The notes beneath the pieces were generated by a model. It saw only the letters and a list, made by a program, of their open reading frames with translations, had not been told where the DNA came from and did no database searches. The translations under genes and the position numbers were made by a program. DNA of 64,000 nucleotides from Lytechinus pictus (lineage: Eukaryota), in the NCBI RefSeq assembly GCF_037042905.1, contig NC_087259.1, forward strand, positions 22,010,001-22,074,000, given 5' to 3'. Below, piece by piece: positions 5,753 through 57,200 of the stretch. Each line of letters opens with the position of its first letter. Position 1 is the first letter of the stretch.

Positions 5753-8700
5753 GTATGTTGCTCTATATTATTCTGAATAAATGAGGCTAAATGTCGAATG
5801 GGCTCTTGTAAAAACTTGAAGTTAGTGCATATTTGCAAGATTGAAATGATTGTGTATCGGTATATATTTTTAACCTTTTACAACATGTATCTTATTGATT
5901 AAGTTTTTTTTAGCTCATCAGATGAGCTTATGCCATGGCGTGTCGTCTGTCCACAATTTCAAAATGCTTCTTCTTCATTGTTTCAAGTCCGATTTCAAAT
6001 TCTGTTTGCTTTATATGATAGCACTAGGTGAGGGATTCAAAATTTCTACACAGAATTTAGAAACTCATTAAATATGCTAATTCATGCACATTTTTCAAAA
6101 TTTGCTAAAAAATGCTTCTCCTTTATTATTGGACCAATTCTGTTTTTTTTTCTTCCTTCTGATAGAGCTTCATGAGGTACACCAAACTTCGACACAGAAT
6201 TTAGAAATTTTGACTAGATTAAATTTTAAGCTAATTTATGTGAAATTAATTCATGCGTATTTTTAAAAATTCACATAAAGTGCTTCTTCTTCGTTTGTTG
6301 ACCGATTTTGATTTTTTTTCTTCCATCTGGTAGAGCTTCATGAGGTTCTTATTCACCTCTACACAGAATTTTGACATTTTGAGTATGAAATTTTTTAAAT
6401 GCTGATTTATGCAAAATTTATTCATTAATCACAGAAAATGCCTCTTCTTTATTTGTTGACCGATTTTGATTTTTTTTCTTCCATCTGGTAGAACTTCATG
6501 AGGTTCACCAAACTTCTACACAGAATTTTGAAATTTTGACTAGAAAATTATTTATGCTAATTTATGCAAAATTTATAATTTTGCTGCATTATTTTTTTAA
6601 CACTAATCAAGACTTCTTACAAAAGTAAGTATTCGTGAAAAGTATAATCATATGTTTAAACATTATGAATCTGCCAAAGAAGGGGGATATGGGATATATA
6701 TAATTTTGTTCACAACTTGTCATGACTTTGAGGTGAATGTTCAGATATTACCAATGCTGTTTATACTTACATGTTCATCCTAACTTTGATCAATTAAATG
6801 ATGATTTTTTTCTTATAGCATGAGAAAGATACAAACTCAAATGGGCTTCCACCATTGAGGTAAGTTAATTTCAGTTTGGTGTTATATGCAAGATTTGTAC
6901 ATGTACAATCCATATTGCACTTAAGCATTTTGCATATATTCATCTAATTTGTCAACTATCTAAAATGAAAAAAAAAATACTGATACTGGTTGTAAGTTTT
7001 AAACATGGATGATATTTACTTTCAAGAGCAAAGTTGGTAGAGTAATATAGCAAATTGCAAATCCATCTTAAAAAATGTTTCATACTGTTCTCACAATAGC
7101 TTTATATGGTTATGTATATGCATATAATGTAGTAATAAACTAGAATAGTCATTACTTTTGAGAGAAAGTTAAAAATACAAATCCATTTTTGAATAACTTT
7201 GACAGTAAGCCATTGTCATCAACGGAGAGTCTGAGACAGATGTCCCGTCAGCTGAATGGTCTCATGGCAGATGTAAGTTTTCAGCTTTTTAAAATCAAAT
7301 CTAACAAATGTACAAAGATTTGATTTAACAAACTCCTTTTTCTCACTGTCTAGTGTTACTGGATTGTGCAATATTTTCTCAGTGGCTTTTCTGAGTGGGC
7401 TTGCATGCTTCTGGGCAAGCAATCTTTTACTCTCTACTTCTTTTCTGTAATTTTTTAAAACTTTTTCAATTATACAGTGTTCTTATGTTTTTGTATACTA
7501 TTCAATTTTCTGTTTTATGGCTGAAAAAATAATTATTATAATCATAAACAATTTTCATTTTTCCTAGTGGTTTGGATTATCTTTGATTATATACATGTAG
7601 TTTGCATAAAAGTTGTATGGTTCAGTGTTAAGAACATGTACAAATTATTTAAGTTTGTTTTTGCAATTTTGATAAAGTCATAAAACAGGAATATATGATA
7701 GTTTTACTCTGTACCGTAATGGAATACAGGTAGGCAATGGAAGAATCCCCCTTCCTTCCAACTTTCTGCAAGTATCTATATATAATACAGTTATGATACA
7801 GTATTGTGATTTATTCAATAAAGCTATATTATCAGGGCCATGTAACGTTAAAAAAACCAACCTTCAATTGTAGTGCAAAAATTGCAATAACAAAGAAAAA
7901 CTGCAATCATTTGTATCATTAAAGTAATTGTTAGTGTATTTATGGCAAGCCATTAACAATTAATTATAATCATTTATAAAAATCATACCCCTTAGGGTTA
8001 TACCTCTAGTTGTATTTGAAAAGAATTTAAAAAAATGTTTACTTATCTTTAGCATCTTGTTCACAATTCACAGGTAATAACATTTTACTGGCACATTCCT
8101 AAAATAAGTGAATAATGATATGAATTTTGATAATTTAGTTTAATGGCCTATTGATTTATTTTTCCTTTTTGAATTTAGACATCACTTGTTAATGGTGAAA
8201 TTGGATCAGGAACAAACGGAATGTCTGATTTAGAGGTGAGAATAACAATTAATTCAGACCTGTCCTTATATTACCCTCCTGTGATGTGTTGTACCATCTT
8301 TCTTTTCAGTCTTATTTTAAATTTCTTTTTTGTTTCTGTGTTGATGCTCACATGAATTATCCTATTAATTGATCAAGAAAGTGATAATATTTGTTATCAC
8401 TTTTTATTCATTGACAGAGACTTCCCCTTATCTGTTGTTTGTAATAAGTAATTATTAATCCCGAACTCAGCCACATGCCCCATATGTTAATAATATATCT
8501 TATGTTGGGCATATGCAGTTTGGATAGACATAATATTCCTCACATCATTACATGTACATAATTTGATAGACTACATATGTACAATATATAGTTTTGTGTT
8601 ATATAACCAATGTCATAAGTCAGATACATCAACTTCACATACTTTGAATCTCTTTCTCTTCCATCCACTTTTTCTCCCCGCCCCTCTCNNNNNNNNNNNN

Positions 8701-11700
8701 NNNNNNNNNNNNNNNNNNNNNNNNNNNNNNNNNNNNNNNNNNNNNNNNNNNNNNNNNNNNNNNNNNNNNNNNNNNNNNNNNNNNNNNNNNNNNNNNNNNN
8801 NNNNNNNNNNNNNNNNNNNNNNNNNNNNNNNNNNNNNNNNNNNNNNNNNNNNNNNNNNNNNNNNNNNNNNNNNNNNNNNNNNNNNNNNNNNNNNNNNNNN
8901 NNNNNNNNNNNNNNNNNNNNNNNNNNNNNNNNNNNNNNNNNNNNNNNNNNNNNNNNNNNNNNNNNNNNNNNNNNNNNNNNNNNNNNNNNNNNNNNNNNNN
9001 NNNNNNNNNNNNNNNNNNNNNNNNNNNNNNNNNNNNNNNNTTTCTCTTTTTTCTCCCTTTCTCAATCCCTGCCCCTTTCTCCCTATTCCCATCTCTCCTT
9101 TTCTATATAGATTCGCAACCAGGAACTAGCAGCAGAGGTGGATCACCAAACCCAGGCCAATAAGAGACTATTGCTGGAGGCAGAACAATTGGTGAATATT
9201 TATATAATATTGACTGGCCTTGAGGGGAACATCAAATATGTCGCCCGCAACAGAATCATATTGGCCCGAGTCTTTAGACAAGGACAACATGGTTCTTTTA
9301 AGGGCAACATATTGATGTTTCCCGAAAGAAGAGCCAGTCAATATTATTATTATTACCTAAGCCTGTACAATGTGTAATTCAAGCTATTATTTGGAACAAT
9401 TCACAGGCCTGTTTGCTTATCACTACTTCTGATTTCAGGTTTTTCACGAACTTAGTGAAGTAACCCTTAAGCAATTGTGACGTAAATTGTTACCTTGCAG
9501 TTGCGCATCATGCATGGCGTGCACATATTCACTTAACGCATTAGCAGAAATATGGCCAATGTCTTATGGGCAAATCCCGGGGAGGGCTACATGGCAAATT
9601 GAAAGTAACGAGTGAAATATGACTTTTATTTATCTGCTAAAATGCCTTGTATAAGTAATAATAGATAATATCCATCTTCTTATTTCAGACTTTTCTTTTA
9701 ATATCTTGATCCTGCTTCATTAAACCTCTTAACCTCTCAATATTTGATTGTCATCTCTTGCATACATTTCAAACTGAAACGATTGACTTTAAAAAAAAAG
9801 TTAAATCCAATTTGAAGTTATTACCGGGTACATATTTCTACATCCTTAATTTATTTAAGTTATTCATATTGTTTTCATATAATTCTTAATAAATTCCCTT
9901 TACTTGCTTGCTAGACACTGTTTTGCTTACATGTATGTTTTGTAAAAATATATCTCATTTGGCCTTACTTTATGAATGAAGTTACCTGATGAATAATTCT
10001 GAATTCTTTTAAATATGGTATACTGGACCGCAGATCTGGAATACTGTGAATGTTTCCCTTTTTACGTGCTCAACTGTTTCTTCATTAACATTCAAACTCA
10101 TAAAGATCATTATTACCTCATGCCTAATTTGAACTCAAACTCGTCTTATATCTTATATTCATGTTTTCAATTATTATTATTTTAACTGAGACGATGGATG
10201 TTCTTTTGTGTGTGCTGATGTTGGTGATGTGTCAAGATGGGTGGGTGTGTTTGTGTGTGTTTAATTTCTTTTTTCTTCTTCATCTGATACATGTATGTAC
10301 ATGTATTTTTATTACTTCATGTTTAAGCGACTTCTTATTTTCAAGTGTTATTTTATTTTGCCTTCCTTGTCTTGTAATGATACTTTTATTTATGAATGTA
10401 CAATTTGATGATGTTTTGTTTTTAATGATTTTCAAGAATAAATTGAATTGAAATTATTATATGATGGTTGGTTACATTTTTAAATTTACTTTTGATTTAT
10501 AGAAACAACAGTGCATAAGGTTACAGGACACTATTGAAAAGGTAAATCATCTATTTTATTTTTCTTGTATATTCTAATAAACATCATATATTCCCTTCCC
10601 ATTTGTTCACATGGATATTTTATAAATCTCTATCAACTTGCATTCATATCAAATAAATGATTATCTGCCAAGTATCTGTCAAAATTTTTCTAGTTTATCT
10701 GGAATTCGGTCTTCGTATTCAATTTATTTTATGGTTTTTATCAGTAGTTAATTCTGAAATTTCTGAAATGTAAGACTTCATACTATTTCCTGTATAAATG
10801 TTCATTTTGGTATTGCATTTATTTTACACTTGATAAATCTCAATGTATTGTATCACATGCTATTTTTATCTCATTTATGCAGAAATTGAATTTTTATATC
10901 AAAACGTTGAGCACTTACAAAGCCTACCTTTGAAGAAAAGTATTAGCCTCAATTTGTTAGGGCACAGCATGAAAAATGCAACTTTTTTTATATTGTTCTG
11001 CTTGCAAAAGTGGATATAACTCCTATTAGAGTCAAAACTGTCTGATTATTGAATGTTTTTCTGTTTAATTTTTTGAAGGAGAGGAACGACTTTGCTCACC
11101 AAGCACATAAAGAACAGAGCGCCCTCAAGGAGCAGCTTCAAGTTCACATTCAGACGATCGGTATTCTGGTCTCGGAGAAGACTGATCTTCAGAGCGCACT
11201 GGGCCAGATTCAAACAGGTTTCAAACAAAAATCTGATGAGGTTGAGAATCTAGCAAGTCGTCTTCAAGTTTCCAGACAACGTGTAGCTGAACTAGAGAGA
11301 GGACTGGCCAGTGCTACAAACTCATCTTCTCAATACCAGAAGGTATGTACCATCTACCAGCATTCAAAGCCGTGTATTAATTTTGTGAACTGAATTTTTA
11401 AAAAGATCAATTCAGGATGAAATATTTATGTGGATAGCTTGCTGATAAGAAGCAATAAAACCAACACAAGGTTTGTTTGAAATACTTTTGATAGATGGGT
11501 TATAAAAAGGCATTTTGGAATACCAAGTGCCAAGAATACACACACAAACGGGCCATTTTTCATGAAGTAAATATAACTGTGTGTGAACGTCTCTTTGCCT
11601 CTCACTGTATACATGTTACTATACTATTCAAGTAATGAAGAAAAGAGAGGAGGGGAAAAAACGGGGTAAAATACAAAGGAAAATATAAGAATTTAAAAGA

Positions 11701-30017: not shown

Positions 30018-30320
30018 TGGCATGACTGGCCGACCATAGTTCAGATGTTCTCATCCATGTATGATGGCATGACTGGCCGACCATAGTTCAGATGTTCTCA
30101 TCCATGTATGATGGCATGACTGGCCGACCATAGTTCAGATGTTCTCATTCATGTATGATGGCATGACTGGCCGACCATAGTTCAGATGTTCTCATCCATG
30201 TATGATGGCGTGACTGGCCGACCATAGTTAAGACATTCTCACGTATGTATTATGGCATGACTGGCCAACCATAAATCAGATGTTCTCATCCATGTATGAT
30301 GGTGTGACTGCCCGACCATA
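29992..30320 (+). repeat. 47-bp tandem repeat x7 overlapping the GOLGA2 stop codon
   Basis: ttctca recurs at 30001, 30048, 30095, 30142, 30189, 30236, 30283. Confidence 0.95.
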
Positions 30321-30639: not shown

Positions 30640-30971
30640 TTTTTTCTCACCTGCATAGCAGAGCAAGACTATTATAGTCGATTTATTGATGGTGAAACAT
30701 TTTGAAATGTCATAACTCTGAAAGTAAATTGATCTATTTCATGAAACTTGAACCTGAGGGTAGTCAAGTAATACTTGTCATCTTGACTGAGTTTCAGGTC
30801 ACATGATCAAAGTCAAAGGTCATTAGAGGTCAATGAACTAAGTATTTATTTTATTTTCAAATGAATGTTGTTTAGGGGGGGATTATTCATCTTAGCTATT
30901 TGCAATGTCAGCTCTACTGCTATATTAAATTATGTAATGCAGGCGAGACTGCCAGAGGTGTCCTACTTGTT
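30640..30971 (+). mobile_element. Short one-unit copy of the 19343 family, downstream of the GOLGA2 stop
   Basis: tctcacctgcatagcagagcaagact ... tgcaggcgagactgccagagg. Confidence 0.78.
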
Positions 30972-35500: not shown

Positions 35501-37985
35501 GTTCAATTACATTATTTTTCAGCATTTATAACAAATATCACCTTATCATAATCCTTTAAGGGTCAAGTCCATCCAAATATGTTGATAAGAATAAGTAGAG
35601 GAAATCAAACATAGCATATGCAATATGATGTAAATTTTGTGCCATAGATTAATGATTGACAGCTTACTGTAATATAAAATACTAAATTGATTAAGAACCA
35701 ATACATAACTTGGAATCATATTTACAGTATTTTAAATTTAATCCTTCATTTGTTTGGGCTATTTGCATTGTTCTTGATGGTAGCCTTGTGTTGTCATTCG
35801 ATATATAAAACAGACCATAATCGTTTAGCAAACCCGAATTTGACCTTCATTTAGTGGTGTTCCAATTACAGTTTCAGTCATTTACCCCTAGCATTTTGCA
35901 CAAAATCGGTACATTCTAGCTTCTAAAAAGACCAATTTTGTTACAGTACAATTTTTCTCAACCATCCATATTTTCGTAATCTCAAGTACTTTTTTAAGCA
36001 AAAAAAAATAGACAATTGCAGTATATAGGAACCTAGAAAAGAAACGCCTATCTTTTATGTATTTTCAAGCTCAAAAAACATTTTTGTTTATGTCAAGTGC
36101 AAGCTCATGAAAATAAATTTTTTTTTTCCGAAATCGTGTATATTTGATACAAATTTTGACATGAAATTTCAATCGATTATGGTCATATTTGATAGCCTGA
36201 CAAAACAGGGAATTCATGCATTTCCCCATAATTGTTTGTCAAACTTTGGGAATTAAATATATGGATAAATTCACGACAGTTAATCTTGAATAAATCAAAT
36301 CAAGAAGATCATAATGATTTTTATGTATGCCCGTCTGTCAAATTCTGTCAAATTTTCATTCATTTTGGGGAATTTTTGATGAAATTCCGGTATATAAATT
36401 AAACGCAATATGGGACCATGATTGTATAAGCAACAATCTCCCGTGCTAAACCCAATTTGGTCGAGAGATGGACTTAGGTTATTCTTATATTCCTATACTT
36501 AATTACAATTTTGACATCCATCTCCACATTGGTGGTGGGGGTGGCAGCCCCCCCCCCCTTGACCAAAGCACTCGAATCATTCGATGTCTTAATAAGGTCA
36601 ACTTTGTTGATACCGTCCTTGTCTCACATCTGTTCTTCATTCGATGCCATTTAATGTAAATTTTTGGGACTTGTTCTTGAGCCTTGACCACCAATAGTGC
36701 TTGAAATGGGTCTACCGGTTTATGTTTTGGCTGGATTTCAAATTATATAGACTTTTAATTATAAAACAATGATCAGCTTTATCAGATCACATGCATGCTT
36801 TGGGATAAGGCCAAGGCAAATATTATCTCCGGTTCAAACGCTCCATGGTCCAAACTTGATTTAACAATCAGTAGAACAATTAATATTTATTCCCGCACAC
36901 ATCGTTCCTTCGAAAGAAATACTTTAAAAAGTAACACTCAAAACGTAAACAACATAATTTTATCGCCTTCAACTTTAAAAGTTTAACGTCGACGGTCACT
37001 GACTTAATTATTCACGGAATACCAATTAATCAATTTAGGTATATAAAACGGTAATCAATATATACTTCAATAAAAAATAGCAAACCTACTATACCTTTGA
37101 CTTTGTCATGCTCTTCGCCTACAGGTTTCGAATATTTGTTTTTCTGAGCAAACAAGATCAGAAAATAAGACAAGCATAATACAAAAAATTAAGAATTAAT
37201 ATTCAAACATTTGTCTTACTGGAAAAGTGTATTGGAGTAACTTCTCAAGCGGGGGGGGGGGGGTAACTTTGTAATTATCTACAAATTCATAACAGCCTCT
37301 GTTTCATATTTGTTAATTGTTATATATTTCATCCACACTTTGGGAATCAAATGAGATAAAACATCATGGCAAAACGGGGCAGCGGCAGTTCATGAATTCC
37401 GAGGGGCGGGGGCTCAATAAAAGCATCACTGGGAAAAGATTATTTTATTGCCTACAAAATATTTGATGATCTTGAAATCGGTGGCAATGAAAACATTTGT
37501 ACGACTGTGTTGAAATATATACCAATGAGAGTATTATGTTCATATCAGATGACGAATAGTAGAGAAGGTGACTTTGTGAGGGCTGAAGATATAATTCGAG
37601 GATTGCACAACATCGTAAAAACGTACTATGCCTACCAGATACTACAAAGATTTGCATACAATGCTCTGTCATTTAGCATAGAATGGCCTCAAGTGTAAAC
37701 ACAAGTTCGGTTTTTTCACTGTTTCTGAACTCACGATGGTTCTTTGAATGCATATGTAGCCTTTTGTAACCCCCCTTCTGTGTTTCATTCTACTCTCGGT
37801 TTGCAAGAACTTACTTATCCATTGGAGCAAAGAAATTAGATGGATTTTAAGAGAAGACAATTTACTGTCAAAGTCAAAACGTTTTGTTAAAACATGCCCT
37901 CAACACTCCCAGCTGATCTTACGCTCGAGTGCAAACCACAAGAAAACAAAGAATATTAGTGCGTTGACCGTATATACAGGGCCAT

Positions 37986-38071
37986 CCAATCGGAAGCGCG
38001 TTTCGCCTTGATAGCGACACATTCGACCAATCAGAAGGTACGATACGTAATCGCCTTTGCTATCGATAAAA
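37986..38071 (+). promoter_or_regulatory. Putative proximal promoter of the 145-aa gene
   Basis: CCAAT at 37986 and 38027, GATA site near 38009, and TATA-like GATAAAA near 38065, about 75 nt before the ATG; locally CpG-rich. Confidence 0.5.
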
Positions 38072-38143
38072 GTCCTCAGCAGACGACAGAGTGAAGTCAA
38101 TCCATTTTCTCGCAAATAATCAGTTAGACTCCATCCTGCCATC

Positions 38144-38200
38144 ATGAAGGTTTCTATGATCATCGCTTGCTTGGCCATTGTGCCTTTCATCGTAGCCCAG
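38144..38200 (+). CDS. Secreted-protein exon 1 (signal peptide)
   Basis: MKVSMIIACLAIVPFIVAQ; CAG|gtaatt donor. Confidence 0.82.
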
Positions 38201-40739
38201 GTAATTATAATCTCTTTCACCCTTCTATTTCCTTTCTCGTATTAATGAAATTAATTCAGGTTTAAATACACATTCAGAACGATTTATTATATCAATTTTA
38301 CCACGACAAATTATTAAAAAATTAAGTAATATTGGAATTGCGGCATTGTCTTCAACTGTAGTTTTTGTTTGTCAATATCGGACCACGTGAACAAATATCT
38401 CACGTAACCATACAAAAATGACTCCATTGTGTTCCTTATACAATGTTCTATGTATTTTGTTTCGTTTTGCTTGTAAACATTGTAATAAGATTTTTATCAT
38501 TATCCATTGCATTTTTTACATTGTATTTGTATGAATATTATCAGATTATTTTCCATATTTTATCATATCAATTTATGAATTCATCTATGGGAATCCTTCA
38601 CACTGTTTATCATTAAGAATCATTTTATTTCAGCGAATGTTCTGCATTATGATTAATAAATGCACCTACCTGCATGTGAAGGGACTCTCTTTAAATGCAG
38701 ACCGGGTTGGCTTGGATGGGGCGGTCTTAACTTTAGAAACAAAACAACAACAACAACATCTCTAATTTCACTTTCTTGATTAAGGCTGCTCCTGTAGTCG
38801 AGGAGGAGGAGGCATACGATCCCTTTGCATATATCGCCAACTTATTCAAGGAAAAGACCCAGCAGGCCTTGGACTTAGTGCAGGAGGGCCATGCTAAAGT
38901 GAACGAATTGTTTACCAGCTTAGAGATACCAGCCATCCCGGGCGAGGACCAGTACCCATCTGCTGAACAACTCAATGCAGAGTTGGTTGCCCTAACTGAG
39001 AATATTGATGCCCTGTCTGAGCAAATCAAAGAACGCATTCAGACTGCCATTGATGGGTATGTTTTACAGCGTAAAAACGTTGTTTAAGATTTTAAGAACG
39101 TTGTTTAAACCAGTCACTGCAACAACTATTGTGTAAAGCTTTAAACAAGTTGTTTAAAGTTTGTTTAAACAATTTGTTAAGCTTTAAAAAAGTTGTTTAA
39201 AAGGTTTAAACAATTAAACAAAAGTTTAAACAATTGTTCAACAGTTTTAATTACTTTTTGTTAGAGTGACTGGTTTAAACAACGTGCTATTTCTTTTACC
39301 GTTTACAATGTATACATGTTTCAATCCGGAAAAAAAAGTTAGGCGAGCCAATGAGGGCGTGTCCCAAGTAAATGATGATTTCTTGACTATTCGAAGAAAA
39401 TGAAGTGATATATTTCATAGAATGTGTTTGGATTTACAAAATAAATCCTAATAATTGATTGTTCTTGAAATTTTTTTTTCTCTCTCTCTCGCTACGATCA
39501 CGCATGAATTATAAATTTGAGGAGGTTTCAGATCACAGTCACCCTTATTCTAGCAGCTAGATGTCGTTGATATTTTTGGGTATCGATATGTCCGTTTTTG
39601 CATGAGAGTTTATATTATAATTTATTTATTTTTGTTTTAGAGACAATTATATTCCGAGGAAAATAATCACTTTGTCGCTCGTTAATAGAGTTTTAAACGG
39701 TGATGTGACAAAGTGCTACCATGCAAAGAGTATAACATTCGGAAGATAATGAGCGAAAATGTATCGCTTATTAGATATCTTTGGCTTATTATATATTTTT
39801 TTTACGTATGTTTATTCCACAAAGTTCCATATTTTTATCGGTAAGATGTTTTGGGAAGCATATGAGAGGGGCAAACATGCACTAGTAGGGCATATATAAC
39901 AGTGAACAAAATGTTTGATTAGACAACGGTTTGGCTCTCGTCTGTTTTGGTGACAAATTCTCACTTCCTGTACAACTCTATATCGAACAGATATATCATG
40001 ATAAATCTACAATATTATCTACTTATACATTTTAAATGATATATATTTCATCACATCAGTTCATTAATCCCATTACATTTAAATTAACTTACATCATAAT
40101 ATACGAGCCAGCACAGCGAGTGAGAAAAATAAGCATTTCTTAATTATGGAATGGATTTTTAAATCTATTATCGAGATTAAGTTTACACTACGATAAGCAT
40201 TTGTCATCAAATTAATAAAAAAGAAAAAGCTTCGTGGTCCATAGTTGAATCTTAAAGACCCAATAGAGAAATGAGACCATGACATTGGGTTACAGCGTAC
40301 ACTCGTTAGGTCTCTAGGGGAGAATGGGGTAGAATCAAGGTCATAAAACACACATGAAATGACAGAATGGGTTTTATTTGTCAAATTCGTTCTGCGTCTG
40401 TTTAGATTTTCTGTTAATCAATGTTGAACATTCGTTCTTAAATTTTTTTTGCTGATTCTGAATTTTTAAGATTATATATATGAGATAAGAAAGAATGAAA
40501 GAAAGAAACATTTTGAAGAAAAAACTGTAGATCTAACGTATAATCGCGACAGAAGATAATATTTGCAACAAATCCCGTAAATATAATCAATGATATTTGT
40601 TAATCTTAATTTCTTTTTCATTTTATTTAGACTCAACTTTGACCAATTTGACTTAGACGGTGAACCCGAACCCGATAGTGAGCCAGAACCAGACAGCGAG
40701 CCAGAACCAGAACAACCTAGATGGTCTTGGCCTTGGTGA
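38144..40739 (+). CDS. Uncharacterised 145-aa secreted acidic amphipathic-helix protein (apolipoprotein-like architecture), 3 exons
   Basis: Exons 38144-38200, 38785-39056 and 40631-40739 join in frame: MKVSMIIACLAIVPFIVAQ|AAPVVEEEEAYDPFAYIANLFKEKTQQALDLVQEGHAKVNELFTSLEIPAIPGEDQYPSAEQLNAELVALTENIDALSEQIKERIQTAIDG|LNFDQFDLDGEPEPDSEPEPDSEPEPEQPRWSWPW*. ATG in gccatcATG context; signal-peptide-like N-terminus. Confidence 0.85.
38785..39056 (+). CDS. Secreted-protein exon 2 (two amphipathic helices)
   Basis: ttaag acceptor, GG|gtatgt donor; open frame with coding-like composition. Confidence 0.87.
39066..39303. mobile_element. Foldback element with many gtttaaac palindromes
   Basis: cgttgtttaaaccagtcact / agtgactggtttaaacaacg. 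Confidence 0.65.
40631..40739 (+). CDS. Secreted-protein exon 3 (EPEPDS repeats, PRWSWPW*)
   Basis: Strong polypyrimidine tract and tttag; phase matches exon 2. Confidence 0.8.
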
Positions 40740-40946
40740 TTCCATCTTTAGGGATTAGGTCCTTAGATGCCACCTCTAATAATTTAATTGAATAGCATGC
40801 GCCTCATTGACAGTTTGGTCCAGATTCTCGCGGAGATAACTACAACAAACATGTTCATCGCGATCGACCCTCATGAATCACATTTTGTTGTCTGCTTGTT
40901 ACAAAGAGGGAATTATACAATCACCATGCCTTATTTTGACATATTT

Positions 40947-41165
40947 CACAGTAAAAACGCTGTTTAAGATTTTATACAACGCTGTTTACTATATGAACCT
41001 TACAGTATTTGTTTAACCGTTTAAACAATTATGTTTAATTTATTGAAGATTAGATACTGAAAATTAAACTTTCTTGCTTAAGATTTAAACACTTGTTTAA
41101 ACTGTTTAAACAATTACTGTAAGGTTCATATAGTAAACAGCGTTGTATAATTTTTTTTTACTGTG
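40947..41165. mobile_element. Foldback MITE related to the 39066 element
   Basis: cacagtaaaaa ... tttttactgtg termini; long IR acaacgctgtttactatatgaaccttacagta. Confidence 0.72.
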
Positions 41166-41819
41166 TACGTATAAAACATAAATTTGTGACGCCACAGGGT
41201 AAATGTCTTTTAATGATGATAAAAGTTTGATCGCCATGTTAGCTATTTTGGAAGAAGATTATTTATTACGGATAGTGAAATTTGATAAAATATGATAATG
41301 TATTTGGTAATAAATTTTGTTTAAATTTCCACACCCCTGTCTGAATTTGTCTGAAACTTTTAAGAGTCGGCAGTCAAACATTAAGATTCGACTTGATTCT
41401 GAGAATGAGTATAATGCTGATACAGATTTGCCGGTGGATTTGTCTTTGATTGAAATGTGGATTTCGGGTTCTTTTGCTGATACCAATACGAGAGAGCTTT
41501 AGCACCGCGACGCACAGCGCTTTCAAGAACATAGAAAATGTATTCAATGCCCTTCATTTCAAATGGCAACAAAGAAGTCTTTGTCGATAATTGGTGAATC
41601 AAATCAGCAGTTTCGTCCTGGACCCTTGACAAACGATGCAATTATTTGTCAGCTCCGAAACTCAGGATGAAACTGCTGTTCCGGTTCACCATTTTTTGAC
41701 AAAGACCTACCAGCTGTCCATTGTAATTTGACAGGCATTTTCATTACATTTACTTTGTTCTTGAATGTGTCGTGTGTCGTGGAAGCAAAACCTCCCTATT
41801 CATTTGTATTAATCATCCA

Positions 41820-54200: not shown

Positions 54201-57200
54201 GTTGCCTGTGCTTGGGATTAACTAATCCTTCAAATTTTCAAGTTACTATCACTCGCGGTGTGTGCTCTTCAGGAAAAAGCTGTAAACCACCTTAGGAAAA
54301 GTAGGCATCTCGTAGTAATGAGAATTGTTGGTGAATATGAAACATACAAATTATTCATATACTCTCCTCAAACGAACTTACATTTTTTCTGATTTGCTCG
54401 TCTGTAACCACTGTTTGAGTAAATATTCATAGTAGCTATCAGCTCGTGCACCCAGGGTCAAGATAGAGTTGGGCCGGAATTGACCAGAGTTGGCATTTAT
54501 AAAGATTGGTACCAGACCTTCTTTCTTTGGCAAATTGTGTAGGTGCATCATTACCTGTTTAAGAAAAGGATATAGAACTGAAATACATGTATTTATCTAA
54601 GTGCTCTAATCTCATCAATGCGTATTCTGAACTCAGGTTCAATTCAAACTCTGGGCCCCGTCTTTCAAAGAGATTGTAACTCTATGTTTATCCATCAGTG
54701 TCATAAATTATTCAACAGGAAACTTGCAAAATGTCCTATGTAATCAAAGGAGAACACACCAGATTGTCCAGAAATCAATGAATTTATGGATATACATTCA
54801 TATCTGACTTTGAGACAGAGGGTCGTGGGTTCGAATTCCAGCCATGGCGTAATTTCCTTCAGCAAGAAATTTATCCACACTGTGCTGCACTCAACCCAGG
54901 TGAGGTGAATGGGTACCCGGTAGCAGGGTGCAACATAAGCGCTTGCCCGATTGCCCGGGGCAAGTAAAAGTTAGAGTCGGGCAAGTGTTTTGAAGCAAAG
55001 ACAAAAACTGCTTGCCCGAATCAGGCAAGCAAAATTCTCCTATGGAAATTATATTTTAGAAAGATTCCCCATATTTCACCATCAAAATATAGAAAAGAAA
55101 AAGAGACAAAAAAAGCAATATCATTAATTTCTTCTTTCGAATTGCAAAACACACAGCTCAGAGACGTACACACACACACAGAATCAATGGCAGTCTAGCA
55201 TACCTAGCTAGCGCCTAGTCCACGCAGCCGATGCATGCAGTTAAGTTTATGGTTTCTACAGAGTACGGTGCTGCAAGAACGAAGTTTGCTCTGGAAGAAA
55301 TCTCCCACAGAACTGTCAAAATTCACATTTCTTACCAATGAAAATTCTTGTAGTGTCCATATTTGATATTGGTGAATTTTCTTCTTTATTTATGACTGGA
55401 TAGTTTGAGCTTTCTTCCTCTCTATTTTCTTTCTTTCTGCCTATCTTTCCTTCTTTTGAATCTCTCTTTATTTCTTTAAATTTCCTTCCTTCTTCTGTTA
55501 ATTTTTCTGTTACTATAGCTGTCTTTCTTTTTGTCATTCTTTTCTTTCTATCTTTTTTTCTTTCTTCCTTCCATCCAACCTTTGTTTACCTATTTCTTTA
55601 ATCCTTCCTTCTTTTTCCCCTTCCTTTCATTCTTTCTTACTGTCTTCCTTCCTTCCGTCCATCCATTCTTTACCTTTTCTTCCTGTCTTTTTTTCTTCCT
55701 TACTTTCTTCATCCCTTTCATTCTTTCCTTTCTTTATTTCTTTCCTTCATTCCTTCCTTTCTTTTTGTCTTTCATTCTTTCTTTCTCCTTCCTTCCTTTC
55801 TTTCCTTCTTTCTTTATTTCTGTCTTTCGTTCTTTTGATCTTTCTTTTTTCCATCCATCCTTTCTTTTCTTCCTTATTTTTTCTTTCTGCCTTCCTTCAT
55901 TCTTTCTGTCTTGTATCTATCTTTTCTTTTTTTCTTTTTTTCCCTTCCTTCCATCTATCCTTATACCTTTTCTTTCTTCCTTCTTTCCTTTCTCTCATTT
56001 TCTTTCTTTCCCTTTTTTCTTTCTTTTTTTCCTTTTATTCATTCCTTTCTTTCCTTCCTTTCTCTTCCTCTCAGTTTTTTTCTATTTTTTTTTTCTCTCT
56101 TTTTTCTTTCCATCCTCCTTTCCCTTCTTTCTTCCTTTCTTTCCATCTTTCTCTTTCCCGCAGCCATTCTCTCTCTTTCTTTATTTATTCATTTTTTCTT
56201 TCTTCCTTCCTTTATTTCTTCGTCCTTTCTGTCTTTCTTCTTACTTTTTTCTTTCATTCTCTCCCCCTCTCTTATTTTTTTTCTCTGGTTATTTTCAGTG
56301 ATTTCCCCTTTTTTATTGTGTGTCCTAGTCCCCTCCAAAATATATGGAAAATATATGAGATTAGGAAATTAACTAAAGAGCATATTTACCATATATGTTG
56401 TCATGATGTTCAAGATAAATGAAAATCATTAAAAAAAAGATATACAACTACAAGGTACATCAGTAGTCATGTTGAAAAATGTTTTTTTTAAGCCGTCAAT
56501 GGTATGGTATGTAAAACTACAGTATAAGGCTATAACTTGTTTTGAAGCAATAAAACTTTGTTTTGAAGGATTTTTTCGGGCAAGTGAAATCTATATTCGG
56601 GCAAGTATTTTCCAACTTTTTGAAAATTTACTTGCCCGACTGGGCAAGTGCTTCAAAAAAGTTATGTAGCACCCTGCCCGGTAGGAAGAAATTCTTTGAA
56701 TGCTTTGAGCACCTAGGCAGCCCAGCTAAAGCCGGGGTAATAATAATAGCAGGGCCCGCTGGGAGAACAGTTTTCAGAACTGATGTGGCTTCCCTGGGTA
56801 AATATACCTATATTATTATTATTATCTAGAAATAGTTTTGAACAAACATGCATTTTATATGTTGACTTTGCTGGCTTTCCATAGTTGTGATTGATCGGAT
56901 CAATCGCAACTCTGGTCTGAAGTTGTGGTTTCACTATGGATAGCCAAGTGTGACACAAATATCTAACAGTAGAGGTTCAACATCTCAGCTCATTCGACAG
57001 TCAAATCATTAATAATTTCTGGCATTGATAGTAAAATAATTTTCTTCAACTATCAAAGTATAAGAAAGGGGCAAAGTTAAACTGAGAAACATACAATATA
57101 CTTTTAACATTTTTGTCCCAAGTTAAATGAGACTTCAGAATACAGGATATTTAATTCAGATTTGTGAATTATCATTACATTTCCAGTTGGGTAGAATCAA

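Follow-up and report, generated by a model that had tools for sequence, protein, structure and literature searches.

The small exchangeable apolipoproteins, among them ApoC-I (PF04691), ApoA-II together with the type-4 antifreeze proteins (PF04711), ApoC-II/III and apoLp-III (PF07464), are small, secreted, Cys-poor proteins built of amphipathic helices that are broken by proline. In their helices, the interface is lined by basic residues and the polar face bears acidic ones. The same traits are found in the product of a gene located at positions 38144-40739 on the forward strand of a 64,000-nucleotide (nt) stretch of the genome of the sea urchin Lytechinus pictus (contig NC_087259.1, positions 22,010,001 to 22,074,000; hereafter, the window). 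A preliminary description of the locus had proposed a hidden gene for a secreted protein constructed like an exchangeable apolipoprotein. The analysis reported here established the locus as a genuine three-exon protein-coding gene, and we read its product as apolipoprotein-like in physics, not in ancestry.

A three-exon gene conserved among echinoids

The coding sequence (CDS) of 438 nt is spliced on the plus strand from 38144-38200, 38785-39056 and 40631-40739, with GT-AG introns, and encodes 145 amino acids; the exons, frames and junctions all match the preliminary description. Exon 1 (38144-38200) consists of 19 codons that hold the signal peptide alone, as had been claimed, and ends in a phase-0 donor (CAG/gtaatt). 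It is 96.5% identical in nucleotides to its counterpart in Lytechinus variegatus and is likewise 57 nt long in Strongylocentrotus purpuratus. Intron 1 (38201-38784, 584 nt) shares 83% identity with the 566-nt intron of L. variegatus, with 10 gap events. Exon 2 (38785-39056, 272 nt; acceptor ttaag/, phase-2 donor GATGG/gtatgt) encodes the acidic N-terminus, helix 1, the loop LPxIPGExxY and helix 2, and is followed by the 1574-nt intron 2 (39057-40630). Exon 3 (40631-40739; acceptor tttag/) encodes LNFDQFDLDG, the EPEPDS repeats and the C-terminal PRWSWPW, terminates with TGA at 40737-40739 and is 97% identical in nucleotides to L. variegatus.

When exon 2 served as the query of a word-index search, a single protein was returned, the RefSeq entry 'uncharacterized protein LOC121429222' of L. 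variegatus, to which the window model is identical at 125 of 145 positions (86%), ungapped from Met1 to the final Trp. Its gene also has three exons, with CDS portions of 57, 272 and 109 nt. The S. purpuratus loci LOC582117 (SPU_025419 / WHL22.19105) and LOC115929328 encode proteins ~52% identical to the window protein, and in the S. purpuratus gene exon 1 is the same, as are the aligned position and phase of intron 2. All three orthologous loci share with the window gene the length of 145 amino acids, three exons, the intron phases and the neighbour GM130/GOLGA2. This gene lies upstream in both L. variegatus and S. purpuratus, a GH47 mannosidase gene lies downstream in L. variegatus, and both L. 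variegatus flanks (the GOLGA2 side and the GH47 side) align to the window. With collinear full-length similarity, intron positions and phases, and genomic neighbours all in agreement, the window gene is the orthologue of LOC121429222 and LOC582117, in conserved synteny downstream of GM130/GOLGA2. The two S. purpuratus proteins are 98% identical to each other, which may reflect a recent duplication or two assembly haplotypes. As the orthologues are already annotated as 'uncharacterized', the gene is not new as a model; it was hidden from the open reading frame (ORF) track, but not in the related genomes.

The range of the family was explored with HMMER against 1.84 billion cluster representatives, and the protein queries were window exon 2 or the 86%-identical L. 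variegatus orthologue, standing in for the spliced 145-residue window protein. Further relatives were two proteins of 153/154 amino acids on JGI contigs and a fragment of exon 2 carried by a Logan genomic contig. The representatives included no relative from sea stars, sea cucumbers, crinoids or other animals, and a metagenome scan recovered only the same two JGI contigs. Long prokaryote-type repeat proteins among the HMMER matches (P0003, HYR_4C/PKD; P0005, Elusimicrobia; P0007, a HAMP-array chemoreceptor; and P0008) were rejected as relatives because their identity was 27-35% over repeated segments, with E-values inflated by repetition. As far as the libraries searched have shown, the family is confined to echinoids, and the lineage restriction suspected earlier is borne out to that extent.

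Exon conservation goes beyond chance in the comparison with L. variegatus. The exons differ by 7.5% substitutions and zero indels, whereas the introns differ by 15.2% substitutions and 0.022 gap events per nt; at the intron rate, ~9.5 indels would be expected in an exon-equivalent length. The probability of finding no indel in 438 nt is ~7e-5, and that of finding at most 33 substitutions in the CDS at the intron rate is ~8e-7. The flanks and introns are 83-89% identical, and the synonymous divergence (dS) is 0.14. The ratio of nonsynonymous to synonymous divergence (omega) is 0.45 against L. variegatus and 0.22-0.37 against remoter relatives, for which dS is saturated (0.2-0.45 overall). By these measures, the gene is fast-evolving (~50% identity between Lytechinus and Strongylocentrotus) yet under purifying selection.

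Transcription and expression

Two JGI contigs, L003 and L004, carry the homologous ORF uninterrupted, with AATAAA and then a poly(A) run at the end, and their alignment to the window ends exactly at 38201, the exon 1 donor. Both therefore represent spliced mRNAs. For L. variegatus, LOC121429222 is tabulated in Tables S2, S4 and S6 of Douglas and Ettensohn 2026 (PMC13200730) with a transcript of 878 nt, which equals the three exons plus an 88-nt 5' untranslated region (UTR) and a 352-nt 3' UTR. The existence of a spliced transcript, raised as a check in the preliminary description, is thus answered in relatives by intronless poly(A) contigs and by a transcript length that the exons and UTRs account for.

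The same tables report 235-340 fragments per kilobase per million (FPKM) in dimethyl sulfoxide (DMSO) control plutei of L. variegatus at 2 days post-fertilization (dpf). Values rose to 427-553 FPKM with the BMP-receptor inhibitor K02288 (log2 fold change 0.85, adjusted p 0.086) and to 988-1098 FPKM with the VEGFR inhibitor axitinib (log2 fold change 1.88, adjusted p 4e-19) (PMC13200730). LOC121429222 is not in the primary-mesenchyme-cell-enriched lists of that study (Tables S7-S10). In S. purpuratus, LOC582117 (WHL22.19105, SPU_025419) is listed among the markers of the 'aboral ectoderm' cluster of larvae at 3 dpf in the portion of supplementary file 1 of Paganos et al. 2021 (PMC8683087) covered here, with a log fold change of 1.02 and detection in 65.9% of cluster cells vs 46.3% of other cells. 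Going by this portion of the table, expression is therefore broad with ectodermal enrichment. The tissue data found comprise whole-pluteus RNA sequencing and this larval single-cell marker table, as far as covered (66% vs 46% of cells). Searches of literature main texts returned nothing relevant on the LOC, XP, SPU or WHL identifiers, which were mentioned in supplementary tables, and nothing relevant on a sea-urchin exchangeable apolipoprotein.

Collectively, the gene is transcribed, spliced and polyadenylated in relatives, abundant in the pluteus, and enriched in aboral ectoderm without being exclusive to it. The assignment of the protein to coelomic fluid, gut or egg in the preliminary description finds no backing in these data, which show an abundant pluteus mRNA with aboral-ectoderm enrichment on a broad background. 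That the gene is real and its product secreted is almost certain. The opposite reading, of a chance ORF or decaying locus devoid of function, has nothing in its favour except the absence of a known domain and is refuted by the spliced transcripts and the conservation; its probability is negligible.

Anatomy of the encoded protein

The leader (MKVSMII.CLA.VPF.VAQ) is the best-conserved segment of the protein. Following the -3/-1 rule, it is predicted to comprise 19-20 residues and to be cleaved probably at VA/Q, or else at AQA/A; cleavage at VA/Q would leave an N-terminal Gln. The mature chain of ~126 amino acids is free of Cys and acidic, as first described, with 31 Asp and Glu (25%) vs six Lys and Arg, a pI of 4.05 and a net charge of about -25. 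Reading the mature sequence directly revealed no N-x-S/T site. AlphaFold2 was run on a single sequence (predicted local distance difference test, pLDDT, 59) and on a five-sequence alignment (pLDDT 51), and predicted helices at 32-64 and 79-109 and a disordered tail, with low confidence. These predictions support the earlier outline of two amphipathic helices with a Pro-rich segment between them. The tail is EP-rich and acidic, and its C-terminal residue is Trp.

Eighteen positions are invariant in three lineages: K41, K43, Q45, D49, H55, N59, D60, P68, I70, P71, G72, Y76, A84, L96, R103, Q105, I108 and D109. The acidic PE-rich tail and the terminal aromatic cluster are also retained in all three. 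The sole indel within helix 2 amounts to seven residues, or two turns, and the hydrophobic face stays in phase; these residues are extra in the Lytechinus lineage, which also lacks an N-terminal W-rich ETDP segment, compared with the Strongylocentrotus orthologues. Each helix contains the motif hydrophobic-K-E-K/R-x-Q-x-A-hydrophobic-D. This shared motif hints at an internal duplication, and the corresponding repeat of ~14-17 residues is weak (BLASTP E 0.001; hhalign P 0.0018, probability 15%).

The preliminary description had emphasised that hydrophobic residues recur every 11 positions in helix 2. The residues cited (L4/I15/I26 and L11/I22/L33) are present, but an 11/3 period is not a distinguishing feature here. 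As L8, L18 and I30 are hydrophobic as well, the pattern is an ordinary 3.6-residue stripe, from any of which an 11-residue recurrence follows. The best period is 3.62 for single sequences and 3.58 and 3.70 for family means (permutation p ~0.01), and 11/3 is indistinguishable from a plain alpha-helix. The hydrophobic moment reaches 0.48-0.67 in the best 18-residue segments of each sequence. Lys and Arg lie 80-114 degrees from the hydrophobic centre and Asp and Glu 113-161 degrees, so that the acidic residues are 32-61 degrees farther away in all three lineages (permutation p 0.002-0.03 each). This arrangement, basic towards the interface and acidic in the middle of the polar face, is the class A charge pattern, although the Lys and Arg residues are few and the lineages are non-independent.

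Relation to apolipoprotein families

When the window exon, the proteins of L. variegatus and S. purpuratus and all five members of the family were scanned against Pfam, no match exceeded the cut-off, in keeping with the earlier failure to recognise a named family. Coiled-coil-type noise (EzrA, NPV_P10, DUF948) was sub-threshold and was dismissed. Among apolipoprotein profiles, ApoC-I reached E 0.11 in two of the five family members and ApoLp-III E 0.18 (12.3 bits vs a cut-off of 36.3). A sequence search of the PDB with the family profile likewise found nothing significant, with ApoA-I at E 0.3. Foldseek searches of Swiss-Prot AFDB and the PDB with the low-confidence AlphaFold2 models gave no match below E 0.8. 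The structural check suggested in the preliminary description thus gave two predicted helices, at pLDDT 59 and 51, and no significant fold match. Membership in an apolipoprotein family is not supported by the profile, PDB or fold searches.

Three ESM-Atlas queries (the L. variegatus protein in full, its mature helical portion alone, and the protein of S. purpuratus) had as their nearest named clusters ApoA-II/AFP4, ApoC-I, ApoC-II/III, apoLp-III and the cestode lipid-binding antigens, with scores of 0.62-0.75. Tandem Pro-punctuated repeats of 11 or 22 residues are not found; instead, there are two helices (~33 and ~31 residues) and one Pro-rich loop. An apolipoprotein-like function, as opposed to family membership, keeps the class A charge pattern and the ESM neighbours on its side, as weak indications that the protein works like one, and has the lack of homology and of tandem repeats against it. 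The likeness to apolipoproteins is physicochemical, not ancestral.

Proposed role and competing explanations

The explanation that we put forward, tentatively and with its inferred mechanism included, is that of a protein active at interfaces, on the extracellular surface of the larva or in its extracellular fluid. A ~14-kDa acidic protein would be secreted by the larval epithelium. The narrow hydrophobic stripes of its two helices would probably pack together as an antiparallel hairpin, hairpins may pair into a four-helix bundle, and the hairpin would open up on lipid or other hydrophobic surfaces, as small exchangeable apolipoproteins do. The acidic, EP-rich tail may act as an extended, solubilising and cation-binding spacer, the aromatic residues at both ends as interfacial anchors, and the conserved loop Tyr with its acidic flanks is a candidate sulfation site. 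That binding to lipids or hydrophobic surfaces is the actual role is possible but doubtful. Unlikely, in our estimate, is the fuller claim of an exchangeable apolipoprotein-type protein evolved within echinoids, de novo or past recognisable homology, whose epithelium-secreted class A helical hairpin would coat lipid or hydrophobic surfaces. If true, it would to our knowledge be the first such echinoderm protein and would add a third independent solution to those of the vertebrate apoA/C/E and insect apoLp-III families.

Various observations weigh against the proposed interface-active role. None of the sequence, profile and fold searches gave a significant match to a lipid-binding family, and the ESM scores of 0.62-0.75 fall under the level reached by shuffled proteins and are leads only. 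Both AlphaFold2 models are of low confidence and do not establish the hairpin packing. Further, the helices have a low mean hydrophobicity and all strongly amphipathic 18-residue segments are net negative, because of which a HeliQuest-type discriminant stays below 0.68 almost everywhere. Large hydrophobic residues make up ~30-39% of each helix, a share closer to that of packed helical proteins than to that of a wide face for binding lipid. The invariance of H55, N59, D60, P68, I70-G72, Y76, R103, Q105 and D109 suggests a defined fold or a protein partner over generic surface activity. A lipid-transport protein would not be expected to show ectodermal or broad expression, and no protein-level detection was found.

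Several of these points would suit a protein that serves a structural or cation-binding function in the extracellular matrix of the larva, be it the hyaline layer, the apical coat or the blastocoel matrix, and has no lipid role. In such a protein, a soluble hairpin or four-helix-bundle module would be joined to an acidic tail with affinity for Ca2+/Mg2+ or for basic partners in the matrix. The enrichment in the aboral-ectoderm cluster, the very abundant larval mRNA, the 25% Asp and Glu, the pI of ~4 and an EP-rich tail like the extended spacers of procyclin type (Pfam PARP E 0.0027, sub-threshold) all favour it, as do narrow hydrophobic stripes with invariant polar residues, typical of a packed helical fold, and the dimerising helical hairpins that are the top, non-significant, fold matches. 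However, the protein lacks a matrix-type domain, Cys residues that could cross-link it and repeats through which it could polymerise, it has not been found at the protein level, and the placement of Lys and Arg at the interface would go unexplained. We consider a matrix component somewhat unlikely, yet such a helical protein fits the data about as well as lipid-surface binding does, and the same holds for a ligand acting through the acidic Tyr loop. This last possibility supposes a secreted ligand, decoy or inhibitor whose loop LPxIPGE(D/E)xY, probably Tyr-sulfated, docks on a basic site of a receptor or protease, with the helices merely as scaffold or dimeriser. Known Tyr sulfation sites carry flanking acidic residues, and the loop Tyr has acidic flanks in all orthologues; no part of the mature chain is better conserved than this loop (P68, I70, P71, G72 and Y76 are invariant in three lineages), and fast evolution elsewhere (omega 0.2-0.45) suits an interaction protein. 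On the other hand, L. variegatus has a single acidic residue (Asp at -2) in the three positions before Tyr, no partner is known and the likeness to sulfated acidic tails is only putative; a loop ligand is rather improbable.

Read strictly, the original proposal would make the protein an echinoid exchangeable apolipoprotein carried on lipoprotein or yolk particles for lipid transport in coelomic fluid, gut or egg. The amphipathic helices, the class A charge pattern and the ESM neighbours speak for such a role, and vertebrate apolipoprotein genes also have the signal peptide on a separate exon, a likeness to the urchin gene that is non-specific. However, homology is absent, two helices stand in place of a tandem 11/22-residue array, the chain is strongly net negative, the sole cell-type assignment in the covered part of the marker table is an aboral-ectoderm cluster on a broad background, and the expression data found do not place the gene in gut, egg or coelomic fluid; lipid transport of this kind is distinctly unlikely. 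A precursor of a Trp-rich C-terminal peptide, similar to the antimicrobial indolicidin, with the leader and an acidic pro-region as carrier, is very improbable. Some antimicrobial-peptide precursors do have such a layout of conserved leader, acidic spacer and variable C-terminus, which the highly conserved leader, acidic spacer and variable aromatic C-terminus of the family (PRWSWPW, PTWSWPW, AKWYQW and FLAWF(D/N)) resemble. Yet no conserved basic processing site precedes the tail, whose charge is +1 at most, is not conserved and is neutral or acidic in two lineages; L. variegatus has Thr for Arg, the third lineage ends in Asp or Asn, and the helical middle is conserved and not a disposable pro-piece. 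The family thus shows no cationic Trp/Pro-rich peptide with a conserved processing site. Finally, we give very little credence to a biomineral matrix protein of spicule, test or spine whose acidic tail would bind calcium carbonate. The protein is acidic and secreted, and its mRNA responds to the skeletogenesis perturbers axitinib and K02288, but it rises and does not fall when skeletogenic signalling is blocked. Further, it is missing from the primary-mesenchyme-enriched Tables S7-S10 (PMC13200730), and it was not found in the covered parts of the supplementary files of the spicule-matrix and test/spine proteomes (PMC2909932, PMC2527298).

Regulatory regions, mobile elements and other features of the window

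Over the 300 nt that precede the ATG, identity to L. variegatus is 96.3%, vs ~85% in introns, and the upstream region aligns block-wise to S. purpuratus and to a third echinoid (the JGI species). This upstream block is predicted to be a conserved promoter module. The candidate proximal promoter or cis-regulatory module spans 37860-38055 on the plus strand, and the alignment reveals two invariant CCAAT boxes, an E-box CAGCTG, a Sox/TCF-like AACAAAG and GATA-like sites as candidate motifs. The 5' UTR is placed at 38056-38143, its start being transferred from the annotated L. variegatus transcript (gene span in PMC13200730 Table S2); mRNA contigs of another echinoid start at ~38108-38112 of the window by alignment. 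Together, the block at 37860-38143 is more conserved than the CDS (96% vs L. variegatus) and offers a ready-made cis-regulatory module for reporter assays. The spliced poly(A) contig L003 (JGI contig Ga0314680_10159285, positions 60-446) reaches ~380 nt upstream of the ATG through the homologue of the promoter block, which suggests that transcripts of that species may also start at a site farther upstream or arise by read-through.

A palindromic, A/T-rich element resembling a miniature inverted-repeat transposable element (MITE), with GTTTAAAC-type internal repeats, is present in two copies. The copy at 39064-39290 lies in intron 2, directly after the exon 2 donor, and is also present in L. 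variegatus. The other, at 40945-41169, lies in the presumed 3' UTR, has arms that are 91% complementary and brings an ATTAAA at 41063; as it is missing from the L. variegatus locus, it is taken as a lineage-specific insertion. The putative 3' UTR (40740-41331, plus strand) includes a conserved AATAAA at 41309 and is split by this ~225-nt insertion.

Elsewhere in the window, at 30083-30226 / 30177-30320 and 30700-30842, a short segment directly beyond the 3' end of GM130 aligns twice to one L. variegatus stretch and looks like a local tandem duplication. A ~140-nt unit there matches a five-copy array near L. variegatus GH47 on the opposite strand and looks like a dispersed repeat family. The long polypyrimidine, CT-rich tract at 55531-56422, with overlapping F/S/L/P-rich pseudo-ORFs in three frames, is not a gene. 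A run of N at ~8700-9040, either an assembly gap or a masked stretch, accompanies X-runs in the ORF list.

Significance and comparison with known systems

The gene is among the more abundant transcripts of the pluteus (FPKM in the hundreds in L. variegatus) and has a tightly conserved promoter, with no known domain or published function. Its orthologues have gone unnoticed in RNA-sequencing and single-cell tables of the two main model urchins. Knocking the gene out or mapping its mRNA in situ would be easy and would contribute to what is known of the larval ectoderm. Should the helices bind lipid, the protein would represent convergent evolution of exchangeable apolipoproteins; if not, it would be an ordinary fast-evolving orphan secreted protein.

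Among described systems, the cestode hydrophobic-ligand-binding proteins (the Taeniidae antigen, PF05596) are also small, secreted and helical and are weak ESM neighbours of the urchin protein, but there is no sequence match and the score is under the noise level. Hairpins of the WXG100/ESAT-6 type (~90 residues) were the top fold matches, at E ~1 and a TM score below 0.5 from a low-confidence model; they share helix-turn-helix geometry only, are bacterial, and have a WXG motif that the urchin protein lacks. The EP repeats of trypanosome procyclin (PF05887) resemble the tail in their E-P-rich acidic stretch, a compositional match of 18 bits vs a cut-off of 100. The orthologues differ from the window gene in their C-terminal aromatic tails, and the MITE-like insertion in the 3' UTR belongs to the window copy. 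Compared with the small exchangeable apolipoproteins, the urchin protein has two helices only, without an 11/22-residue array, and a narrower hydrophobic face; it is also far more negative, carries a long acidic EP tail and comes from a gene with ectodermal or broad expression.

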